Shown here in pieces: positions 49,071-51,266 of a stretch of 64,000 bases of DNA; the stretch's first letter is position 1; each line of letters starts with the position of its first letter. The position numbers and the translations under genes are program-made. Where the stretch lies: NCBI RefSeq assembly GCF_033153115.1, contig NW_026889768.1:1984001-2048000 (forward strand), in the 5' to 3' direction. The stretch comes from Saccostrea echinata (lineage: Eukaryota). The notes beneath the pieces were generated by a model. The model was given only the letters and a program-made list of their open reading frames with translations. It did not search any database and was not told the origin of the DNA.

Positions 49071-51266
49071 TGACCAAACTTGGTACAAAGCATCCTTGGG
49101 TGAAGGGGAATTTAAATTGTTAAAATGAAGGGCCATGTCCCCTCACAAGGGGAGATAATCAAGAGAAGACAAAAATAGGGTGGGGTCATTAAAAAATCTT
49201 CTTCTCAAGAACCACAGGGCCAGTAAAGCTGAAACTTATATGGAAGCATCCTGGGGTAGTGTAGATTCTAAATTGTTCAAATCATGATCCCCGGGGGTCG
49301 GGTGGGGCCACAATGGGCGATCAAAGTTTTACATAGGAATATATAGGAAAAATCTTTAAAAATCTTCTTCTCAAGAACAGCAAAGCCATGATTGGTCATA
49401 TTTACATGGAAGCATCCTCAGGTATTGTAGATTCAAGTTTTTATTCAAATCATCACCCCGGGGGTCGGGTGGGGCAACAATGGGTGATCAAAGTTTTACA
49501 TAGGAATATATAGGAATAATCTTTAAAAATCTTCTTCTCAAGAACAGTAAAGCCATGATTGGTCATATTTATATGGTAGCATCCTCAGATAGTGTAGATT
49601 CAAGTTTGTTCAAATCATGACCCCCGGGGGTCGGGTGGGGCAACAATGGGCGATCAAAGTTTTACATAGGAATATATAGGAATAATCTTTAAAAATCTTC
49701 TTCTCAAGAACAGTAAAGCCATGATTGGTCATATTTATATGGTAGCATCCTCAGGTAGTGTAGATTCAAGTTTGTTCAAATCATGACCCCTGGGGGTCGG
49801 GTGGGGCAACAATGGGCGATCAAAGTTTTACATAGGAATATATAGGAAAAATCTTTAAAAATCTTCTTCTCAAGAACAGCAAAGCCATGATTGGTCATAT
49901 TTATATGGTAGCATCCACAGATAGTGTAGATTCAAGTTTGTTCAAATCATGAACCACTTTTTTATTTGAACTTTTCAACCTTTCAAGACTGAACTGATTT
50001 CTGCATTTTCCTAGCCATAGTGCTCAGGTGAGTGATGTGGCCCCTGGGCCTCTTGTTTTCATGAAAGGTACTATAATTTTTTTCCCACTTATCTTTGATT
50101 CAGATCAAGAGTTAAAAGAGGAGGATGAATTTTATGATGCTGTTGATGAAGAAGGGGAAAAACAGACTCCAACAAAGGACCCACTGAATGATGTGTCTAA
50201 TGACAAAGAATCCGAATTGACATCAAGTCCAGCAAAGTCCAAAGAACCAAATGATCAGTCTGAAGTGGAGAGCCAAGGAAGGTCTGTCAAGGAGGAAGAG
50301 CAGTTGGAAGATGAAGAGGTCACCAGAGGTGAGAAGATGGATGACAACATTAACAACAACTGTGAGGAGCCTGAGGATATGAGGACCGAGGACTTGTCCT
50401 CACTCAGTGGGGAACACCAACCTGATGTCAACAGTGAGGAAAAGAAAGGGGAAGCAACTGTAGACAAAATGAATGAGGACAAACATGATATAGTAGGAGA
50501 TGTGATAGATAATGAGGGCATTAAGGAAGAAGTTAGTCGGGAGAATGAGGATAAACCTGATCCGGAGGAAGATGTGGCAGAGAGCGAGGGCATTAAGGAA
50601 GATGTGGCAGAGAGTGAGGTCATTAAGGAAGTGGATGTTTGTCAGGAGATTGAGGATAAGTTAAATGTAGATGATGATACAGGAAACAGGGAAGATGTTA
50701 GTCAGAAAGAGTGTGAAGATGATAGTAAGAAAGAGAGTGAAGATGCAAGTCTGAATGAAAGTGAAGATACTGATGTCATCAAAAGAGATAGTGAAGATAC
50801 TAGTCAAAAAGACAGTGAAGATATTGGTCAGAGAAAGAATGAAGATGGTAGTAATCAAGAGACTGAAGAAGCTGATGCAGATAGCAAGAAAAGTGAAAAT
50901 GATGGTCAGAGAGATGAAGTTTCTGAGGAAGAGACCCAAGGGAAAGAGGTGTGTGAAGGTGAAGACTCAGGAAAGGTTGTGGAGGAAGAATTCAAAAACA
51001 CTGATTCCAGACAGAGTGATTCTGAAGATGTCTGTGGTAAGGAGGACGGGAATGGTTTGGTTAAAGATAAAGAACAGTCTGATTCTAAAGAAGAAAAAGA
51101 AAATTTGGAGCACTGTAGTGACAGAGTGATTGCCAATATTGACAGCGAGGGAGAAAACTCAGATGATCCATCAGACACGGAGATCGAAAATACGGAAGGA
51201 TTGGAGGGGGGTGGAAATGGAGAGGATAGATTAAAGGAAGTCAAGGAGGCAGCTGATTATAAATAG
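25015..51266 (+). CDS. Giant multi-Tudor domain protein (Tudor/TDRD6/TDRD15-like germ-granule scaffold): 13 extended Tudor domains, central FG/RG region with 4 CCHC zinc knuckles, acidic tail; 19 coding exons, about 3531 aa
   Basis: Phase-consistent exons: 25015-27178 (GC donor), 27332-27455, 27944-28194, 28586-28723, 33348-33579, 33993-34438, 34639-34923 (junction ambiguous), 36188-39541, 39665-39733, 40454-40546, 43510-44008, 44390-44638, 45041-46004, 46739-46904, 47045-47224, 47502-47567, 47737-47859, 48768-48797, 50104-51266. Thirteen (W/Y)YR...(F/Y)xD(Y/F)GN-type signatures, most preceded by SN-like P..F(W/Y)xQ strands. Exact TDRD orthology cannot be fixed from the sequence alone. Confidence 0.9.
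27510..27790. mobile_element. Decayed fragment of the 166-bp-satellite Helentron family
   Basis: GTAGTGTAGATTCAAATTTGTTCAAATCA and terminal GGCCCATGGGCC hairpin match 48908-50057. Confidence 0.6.
28960..30230. mobile_element. Non-autonomous TIR element (Kolobok-like)
   Basis: AGGATGATGTGACATA ... TATGTCACATCATCCT, flanked by ATAA/TTAT. Confidence 0.7.
30492..31370. mobile_element. Non-autonomous TIR element (PIF/Harbinger-like)
   Basis: TAA|GGCCTAAAAAATTAATAACTTGGTTCTCA ... TGAGAACCAAGTTATTAATTTTTTTTTTGGCC|CAA. Confidence 0.65.
31518..31664. mobile_element. 147-bp MITE with 5-bp target duplication
   Basis: CAATG|CAGTGGCGGATCCAG ... CTAAATCTGCCAGTG|CAATG. Confidence 0.65.
31838..33190. mobile_element. 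TIR element hosting a nested insertion
   Basis: TAAACA|CAGTGATTGGGA ... TCCCAATCACTG|TAAACA. Confidence 0.65.
32195..32998. mobile_element. Nested Mutator-like non-autonomous element
   Basis: Perfect 9-bp target duplication CATTTTAAC; about 100-bp TIRs starting TAGCTGCAATAATGTAGCCCTCTCCA. Confidence 0.8.
34291..34410 (+). repeat. 30-bp coding tandem repeat ([10 protein letters not shown]-like), about 4 copies
   Basis: GGATTTGGAGGAAGTGAGGGTGGATCCAG(A/G) repeated with few changes. Confidence 0.85.
35231..36077. mobile_element. Non-autonomous TIR element with a GC-rich internal hairpin cluster
   Basis: TTAAT|CAGTGTTTTCAATAAG ... CTTATTGAAAACACTG|TTAAT. Confidence 0.75.
39836..40343. mobile_element. 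HINE/Helentron-like element
   Basis: TAGTCCCCTACCGG / CCGGTAGGGGACTA inverted repeat, (CTGT/CCGT)n, two internal repeat units, hairpin then CTTGTT end. Decayed relative near 58640-58800. Confidence 0.75.
40650..43415. mobile_element. 2.8-kb non-coding TIR element, superfamily unassigned
   Basis: GGCTTAGCCAAGATCAGGTGCCCAT ... ATGGGCACCTGATCTTGACCAAGCC; seven internal GTCCGTAGCCC motifs. Confidence 0.75.
44616..44800 (+). repeat. Triplicated about 70-bp unit spanning an exon end and 5' splice site
   Basis: GAAC(G/A)GGACATTCTGTATGGGAG|GTTAGTT at about 44616, 44683, 44754. Confidence 0.85.
46025..46485. mobile_element. hAT-like MITE
   Basis: TAGGACTGTCACAGTTCC ... GGAACTGTGAAAGCCCTG; 8-bp flanks AAATTAAG/ATATTAAG. 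Confidence 0.6.
48908..50057. mobile_element. Helentron/HINE element carrying a 166-bp satellite array (oyster Cg170-like)
   Basis: TTAGCTCACCTGAGC...; (CCGT/CTGT)n; units at 49321, 49488, 49654, 49820; end GCTCAGGTGAG..GGCCCCTGGGCCTCTTGTT. Confidence 0.85.

Follow-up and report, generated by a model that had tools for sequence, protein, structure and literature searches.

We analyzed a 64,000-nucleotide stretch of the genome of the oyster Saccostrea echinata (GCF_033153115.1, contig NW_026889768.1, positions 1,984,001 to 2,048,000; hereafter the window), which carries on its + strand a giant multi-exon gene for a multi-Tudor protein of the germ-granule type. Close to its start, the last coding exon of this gene (50104-51266, + strand) encodes a peptide resembling the FFAT motif (two phenylalanines set in a tract of acidic residues), the ligand of VAP-family receptors of the endoplasmic reticulum (ER). 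The core of this peptide, EFYDAVD (E1-F2-Y3-D4-A5-V6-D7; 50127-50147, +), is preceded by the six-residue flank ELKEED (50109-50126, +). Judging from the sequence, we consider core and acidic flank to be probably, though by no means certainly, a working binding site for a VAP-family receptor. The original prediction, made from the DNA letters alone, had placed an FFAT-like motif with this core in the last exon, and translation, identity with the RefSeq protein and spliced contigs all confirmed it.

The motif in the last exon and its score

The last exon follows an AG acceptor (50102-50103), and its first codon uses the G left over from the preceding exon to encode D. The core starts 23 nt into the exon and is followed by a 372-residue acidic tail, which ends at the stop codon 51264-51266; D and E together make up 36% of the last-exon translation. 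This translation matches, without a difference (386/386), residues 3103-3488 of P0204 (3488 aa), which is named "uncharacterized protein LOC133189557 [Saccostrea echinata]" in RefSeq. The RefSeq model also includes, ahead of the motif, a 30-nt micro-exon (48768-48797, +, phase 1) with AG/GT borders, which encodes (E)REAEEDKTE.

Contigs from four runs (at most three samples, from two studies, with the RNA status of the runs guessed) were aligned to 46500-51500; these contigs carry no information on tissue or expression level. Each of the four runs gave one long contig of 3744-5655 nt that continued through the last exon. The ranges skipped by the contigs, 46905-47044, 47225-47501, 47568-47736, 47860-48767 and 48798-50103, have GT..AG ends, and AG/GT borders and phase 1 were found at all five junctions checked. 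In 4/4 runs the micro-exon was joined on both sides (47859>48768 and 48797>50104; raw joints 47857>48766 and 48795>50102, with the cut then shifted 2 to the right). Because spliced contigs come only from transcripts, the micro-exon and the motif are both part of the mature mRNA. The micro-exon had also been claimed to add acidic residues upstream of the motif. These residues are indeed present in the message, but they lie 8-17 residues upstream of the core, outside the six-residue flank that is scored.

We scored the motif with a penalty that we ourselves simplified from the seven-element scheme and the flank rule of PMC3261905, so all values given here are approximate. According to the legend of Table S2 in that paper, the flank rule runs over six residues and counts +1 for D/E, +0.5 for S/T and −1 for K/R; ELKEED reaches +3 and is thus acidic. 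EFYDAVD received a penalty of 0.5, charged solely for F3>Y. PMC3261905 describes likely VAP interactors as cytoplasmic, non-helical at the motif, conserved there above the neighboring residues, and with at most two suboptimal elements, a number within which the oyster motif stays on this approximate score. From its multi-Tudor family, the oyster protein is predicted to be cytoplasmic. Compared with EFFDA-E, the oyster core differs at F3>Y and E7>D only, and its letters at positions 1-5 are the same as those of ORP1/ORP1L (EFYDA-S). EFYDA-S of human ORP1 is reported to bind VAP strongly, and in one motif K at position 3 is still compatible with VAP binding (PMC3261905). The same paper counts only 15 human motifs with at most one suboptimal element, of which 12 were already known.

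Within the oyster protein the motif stands well apart. The runner-up site has a penalty of 7.25 in the tail and of 4.5 in the whole 3488-aa protein, compared with 0.5 for the motif, and the tail contains just two F and two Y. We shuffled the 387-residue tail 200,000 times while preserving its composition. A penalty of at most 0.5 was reached in none of the shuffles, at most 1.0 in 31 and at most 2.0 in 596. The motif is not a by-product of acidic composition. Its FFAT-like character, as proposed in the original prediction, holds up on scoring: within our approximation of the published scheme, it is a strong motif.

Conservation of the motif and its surroundings

Relatives of the oyster protein were collected by a HMMER search with exon 45036-46064 as query against 1.84 billion representatives, which returned 1983 matches at E ≤ 0.001; the best 150 were multi-Tudor proteins. 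By exon-by-exon BLAST, the proteins of Pecten maximus (P0015) and Mytilus trossulus (P0024) are colinear orthologues with about 38-40% identity. A word-index search added three scallops, Mercenaria, Dreissena, Pinctada and an oyster-like protein, P0274 (58% identical). A site with a penalty of at most 1.0 was present in 8 of the 11 bivalve proteins scored. The cores are EFYDAVD in Saccostrea, EFYDAYD in P0274, EFYDAED in Mytilus, and EFYDAEE in Pecten, Ylistrum, Mizuhopecten and Argopecten. Mercenaria has SFYDADE, 11 residues from the C-terminus, and also DFEDAHE.

The sequences were aligned with MAFFT from the last Tudor domain onward, up to the C-terminus, and the poorly aligning Pinctada sequence was dropped from the invariance count. 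DEFYDA was invariant in 7/7 aligned oyster, mussel and scallop (pteriomorph) sequences. Downstream of it, only two other columns were invariant among these seven, both E, and the tail of the oyster was 13-23% identical to those of the scallops or mussel. EFYDA is therefore kept in the pteriomorph orthologues while the tail diverges, a favorable outcome of the check that the original prediction had named for bivalves.

The same prediction had assigned the disordered tail the role of a spacer, and this part has to be given up. The acidic tail cannot be the spacer because the motif sits at its N-terminal start, not beyond it. The real linker is the stretch of about 95 residues between the last Tudor domain and the motif. 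This last, degenerate Tudor domain ends in 46737-47224 (+), on two exons (about 46737-46904 and 47045-47224), as seen from a Pfam TUDOR match (E = 0.0056 on the open reading frame (ORF) 46739-46969), the splice joints and the alignment with the last Tudor domain of the orthologues. The linker holds two further conserved blocks. Block 1 lies in the exon 47502-47567 (+), defined by splice joints and borders, and has the consensus F.E[LM].[LM]....S.[GS]S, which is common to oyster, mussel, scallops and Potamilus; across oyster, mussel and scallops it takes the form SFNELxLxxxNSxGSEE. Block 2, in the exon 47737-47859 (+), is conserved across oyster, mussel and scallops, with the invariant columns S.LETT.AS and DSF.F in 7/7 aligned sequences; in oysters it is duplicated, a degenerate copy, LETTDAS, preceding the block. 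Both blocks were found in bivalves only, and they may be additional docking or phosphorylation sites.

The motif pattern turned out to be broader than a supposition of bivalves only, extending to sea stars as well as a sponge, a sea cucumber, a brachiopod, a hemichordate, gastropods and an annelid. In 3/3 sea-star TDRD6-like proteins (Acanthaster, Patiria and Asterias), GEFFDAVD stands directly behind the last Tudor domain, with a penalty of 0-0.5, and the residues neighboring it diverge among the three. The key residues of the motif are thus conserved above their neighbors in both the pteriomorphs (7/7) and the sea stars (3/3). FFAT-like cores were also found in the sponge Halisarca (EFYDTQE), Holothuria (EFEDAQT and EFEDAET), Lingula (EFEDALS), Saccoglossus (DFLDSID), Haliotis asinina (EFSDAED), Batillaria (DFQDAME), Babylonia (EFSDAKE), Littorina (EFTDAKE), Owenia (DFQDAQE) and Bicyclus (DFLDAEN). 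The FFAT reading is most convincing in bivalves, sea stars and the sponge, in which position 3 is aromatic, and weaker where this position is E, Q, S or T.

Counts across the family gave a similar picture. The pattern [DE][DE]F.D[ACST].[DEST] occurred in 18 of the best 150 representatives, compared with 2/150 when the sequences were reversed and 1.59 ± 1.30 (maximum 5) in 100 local shuffles, and 17 of the 18 matches lay beyond 70% of the protein length. A penalty of at most 1 was reached in 6/150 representatives, in none of the reversed sequences and in a mean of 0.35 over 40 shuffles. No Tudor core followed the motif in 21 of the 25 motif-bearing proteins. The recurrence from sponge to echinoderms suggests that the proposed link to the ER may be old.

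Several matches were set aside. Among those to a strict regular expression (6/150), P0010 (EFYESCD) and P0036 (DYYDSSS) lack an acidic flank and were treated as chance. Of the matches to a relaxed filter, those in Ceutorhynchus (EFKETGE), Ignelater and Uloborus (DYEEAVE) were regarded as chance or weak, as was SFVDCPT of Rhodnius, which lies at residue 405 of 2582, a long way before the C-terminal tail, and has a weak flank. As a separate observation, paired F-x-D-[AST] motifs spaced 25-45 residues apart occur in the tails of P0014, P0017, P0019, P0023, P0083 and P0208; examples are EFEDAQT/EFEDAET in Holothuria and DFEDAHE/SFYDADE in Mercenaria. Paired weak motifs are known among FFAT proteins.

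Register of the motif and alternative readings

A motif of similar letters is known from another system. The PRMT5-binding motif (PBM) of pICln, RIOK1 and COPR5 has the sequence GQF[D/E]DA[D/E] and is located near the protein terminus, outside Pfam domains; its most sensitive residues are F, Q and the second D, with Q the second most sensitive in an alanine scan (bioRxiv 10.1101/2020.08.22.256347). We listed, with no other condition, every F.DA site that the C-terminal tails of the best 150 representatives contain. There were 23 such sites, compared with 5.5 expected from composition, and the reverse pattern AD.F occurred 3 times. Counting from F, position −1 was acidic in 16/23 and Q in 0/23, and position −2 was acidic in 17/23 and G in 1/23. 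Acidic residues occupied position +1 in 5/23, +4 in 5/23 and +5 in 12/23, against a background acidity of 0.21. This pattern fits the FFAT register (acidic tract, E1, F2, x3, D4, A5, x6, E7), not that of the PBM. Position 6, nominally any residue in FFAT (position +4 counted from F), was hydrophobic (L, V, I or M) in 13 of the 23 sites, a sign, perhaps, that the family makes one more contact here or follows a consensus that differs slightly.

Several points weigh against the VAP-binding reading. The score of the motif comes from a simplified penalty, not from published FFAT matrices. A disordered, non-helical state of the motif region is consistent with a single-sequence AlphaFold2 model of the tail, which has a mean predicted local distance difference test score (pLDDT) of 44.7, coil at the motif and a sole helix at residues 373-380; such a model is weak evidence on this point. 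Three of the 11 bivalves lack the motif or have a weak form of it, with penalties of 3.5 in Pinctada, 3.0 in Dreissena and 4.0 in Potamilus. The Pinctada site, EFSDCLE, lies within block 1, and no EFYDA is present; this model (1929 aa) may be incomplete. With the relaxed filter, 21 of 72 named proteins were matched and 51 showed no motif, among the latter the vertebrate TDRD6 and TDRD15 entries, almost every insect Tudor entry, Branchiostoma, Lottia, Antedon, the nemerteans Lineus and Tubulanus, the chiton Liolophura and the sea anemone Actinostola. Since the motif is missing from most other named relatives, any function would be confined to certain lineages or replaceable. Position 3 is often taken by a non-aromatic residue (E, Q, S, T, H, C or L) in carriers other than bivalves, sea stars and the sponge. 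Finally, F-x-D-A is common to the PBM and the Tudor motif.

This last point raises the question of whether the peptide is instead a PBM-like adaptor that docks the PRMT5:MEP50 methylosome, so that Tudor clients would be symmetrically dimethylated beside their reader. Such a motif on the reader of PRMT5's mark would make biological sense, and fly Tudor has been linked to the PRMT5/MEP50 pair. Like the PBM, the Tudor motif also stands in acidic surroundings, outside domains and near a protein terminus, and some relatives come close to the PBM, namely Holothuria (EFEDAET, twice), Lingula (EFEDALS) and Mercenaria (DFEDAHE). The oyster motif nevertheless fits only three of the seven PBM positions (F, D and A). 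It has D-E before F, Y at +1 and V after A, which disagrees with the PBM on both counts used, and its acidic residue comes two positions after A, not one. In the family as a whole, Q at −1 and G at −2 are likewise missing or nearly so, and +1 and +4 are seldom acidic; bivalves and sea stars retain an aromatic residue at +1, where the PBM has an acidic one. With G, Q and both acidic positions missing, we rejected the PBM for the oyster and hold methylosome docking to be highly unlikely. A different partner for acidic-aromatic peptides has also to be weighed, such as the ATG8/FIP200 type bound by LC3-interacting or FIP200-interacting regions (LIR/FIR), or a three-block C-terminal docking module of which the motif would be a part. 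The LIR consensus is [WFY]xx[LIV] behind acidic residues. YDAV of the oyster and FDAV of the sea stars are formally LIR cores, the frequent hydrophobic residue at position 6 is compatible with one, and the two further conserved blocks within 95 residues upstream suggest a composite module. Against this, the core reads YDAE in four scallops and the mussel and YDAY in P0274, and we rejected the LIR as [WFY]xx[LIV] is not conserved in the orthologues. The invariant D-E-F-Y-D-A spans the FFAT-critical positions 2, 4 and 5, and blocks 1 and 2 are restricted to bivalves, whereas the F-x-D-A motif recurs across phyla. Another docking partner of this kind is, in our estimate, unlikely.

A chance look-alike was also considered. 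The tail is rich in D and E, the motif lies near the exon start, where a constraint on RNA or splice site might preserve it, and many relatives lack it; an FFAT-like peptide could arise in such low-complexity sequence and be kept by drift. The shuffles speak against this, as none of the 200,000 attained the score of the motif. Six consecutive residues are invariant in oysters, mussel and scallops, and the flanks and the remaining tail are not. A second phylum, represented by the sea stars, independently keeps the canonical version, and the enrichment in the family is about 10-fold over reversed and shuffled controls. We therefore give hardly any credence to chance, and return to a VAP-family receptor as the preferred partner of the oyster motif.

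The multi-Tudor scaffold and a possible link to the ER

The gene body extends over 24982-46064 (+) in large exon ORFs that encode Tudor domains, an RGG-rich region and four CCHC knuckles. Pfam TUDOR was present in 7 of the 10 exon ORFs submitted (best E = 1.8e-145), in agreement with a multi-Tudor scaffold. Matches were found in 24982-27210, 27924-28205, 36163-39549, 43335-44009, 45036-46064 and 46739-46969, with four TUDOR stretches in the first of these and five in 36163-39549; E values in the gene body were 1.6e-82, 1.8e-145, 3.6e-33 and 1.5e-27. The relatives are named "maternal protein tudor-like", "TDRD6-like" or "TDRD15-like" in their sources. An RGG/FG-rich region and the CCHC zinc knuckles interrupt the middle of the Tudor array (33961-34937 and 36163-36700). 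The four knuckles lie in the open frame 34614-34937 (Pfam zf-CCHC, 2.7e-34), and precomputed Pfam annotation lists zf-CCHC for the Mercenaria and Dreissena proteins as well.

Further features of the window were noted along the way. The acidic tail contains short internal direct repeats at 50480-50640, with serial S/KxxSEDxS units further on, which are typical of fast-evolving low-complexity sequence. The last intron (about 48840-50060) harbors a highly repeated element, with a contig depth that runs from the thousands to above 100,000 in each of the four runs, and three near-identical 40-aa minus-strand ORFs at 49277-49399, 49610-49732 and 49776-49898; it is probably a transcribed repeat of high abundance, either interspersed or in tandem. 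A run of 130 N at 3001-3130 marks an assembly gap or a masked region.

A receptor for the motif appears to be available. An MSP-domain exon in the same genome matches human VAPA with E = 1.5e-22 and carries CFKVKTTAPKRYCVRPN; by this similarity, a VAP is encoded in the genome. Another MSP-domain exon with a weaker match, L002 (G000:C56:7671061-7671159; 31.3 bits), was also observed; it may be part of a MOSPD-type protein, which would offer a different receptor for FFAT motifs. In ORP1, OSBP and CERT, F2 of the FFAT motif occupies a hydrophobic pocket, D4 and A5 make specific contacts, and the acidic flank lies on a basic surface. Because of this binding mode, we infer that the oyster motif would bind VAP in the same way. 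As a short, disordered and extended peptide, it would dock on the MSP domain of a VAP-family receptor anchored in the ER (VAP, or possibly a MOSPD2-like protein) and so tether the Tudor scaffold to the ER face. The acidic tail may keep the motif exposed or tune the solubility of the scaffold. The germ-granule identity of the scaffold is deduced from its family membership, and the cellular consequence of the motif would follow by analogy.

The proposed contact resembles known systems in part. With ORP1/ORP1L, OSBP, CERT and Nir2-type proteins, most of which carry the canonical EFFDA-E, the oyster protein has in common an acidic upstream tract and the build of a large multidomain protein, cytosolic by prediction in the oyster, with the motif in a stretch that in the oyster may be unstructured. 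In contrast to these lipid-transfer proteins, the carrier is a multi-Tudor ribonucleoprotein (RNP) scaffold without a lipid-transfer domain or a membrane anchor of its own, and it would bring a condensate-type scaffold to the ER instead of bridging two membranes. The anchors of the PIWI-interacting RNA (piRNA) machinery, TDRKH/Papi, MitoPLD/Zucchini and GASZ, sit on mitochondria by means of transmembrane or mitochondrial targeting segments. They share with our proposal the idea of Tudor-containing germ-line RNP machinery fixed to an organelle surface; the oyster protein would instead use a soluble peptide-receptor contact with the ER. Caspar (FAF1) of Drosophila is likewise linked to germ plasm and has an FFAT-like motif, but belongs to a UBA/UAS/UBX family. 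Its motif binds VAPB, and a version with the FFAT motif deleted still rescued germ-cell number (PMC11643641), which makes the VAP link of Caspar dispensable or redundant for germ-cell number. Proteomics cited in the same paper found ER-associated proteins with Vasa/Tudor polar-granule complexes in Drosophila (PMC11643641). Given the Vasa/Tudor proteomics and the Caspar deletion result, an ER link is plausible, and its importance should not be assumed.

The original prediction had stated that no ER docking of this kind was known for a multi-Tudor protein, and we found no report of it in the literature searched. No publication was found for FFAT with TDRD, or for VAPB with TDRD and MSP domain, in searches that did not extend to proteome-wide FFAT prediction lists. 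The literature found for FFAT with "Tudor domain" concerns Caspar and the lamin B receptor only, and that found for FFAT with piRNA was irrelevant, judged from titles and abstracts. Among the publications listed for germ granules, none mentioned FFAT. In silico, the multi-Tudor proteins are a credible new family of FFAT carriers.

These findings bear on the question of how germ granules, which lack a membrane, come to lie beside organelles. A canonical and selectively conserved FFAT motif on the largest Tudor scaffold gives the hypothesis of an ER anchor a concrete form. VAP clients are mainly lipid-transfer and tethering proteins, and a condensate scaffold would join them. On a tentative and rather doubtful extension, the giant multi-Tudor scaffold of early animals may already have carried, behind its Tudor array, a VAP-binding FFAT motif by which germ granules or nuage were anchored to the ER itself or to its contact sites; from the distribution of the motif, it would have been retained in the sponge, sea stars, sea cucumber, hemichordate, brachiopod, gastropods and bivalves, and lost in vertebrates and most insects in favor of mitochondrial anchors. 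If this were true, the position of germ granules in many marine invertebrates would be set by a peptide-receptor contact with the ER, one that phosphorylation or competing FFAT proteins could switch. An old link would be relevant beyond oysters, for example to the biology of the Balbiani body and nuage. Even without VAP binding, the conserved peptide marks a partner site on multi-Tudor proteins.

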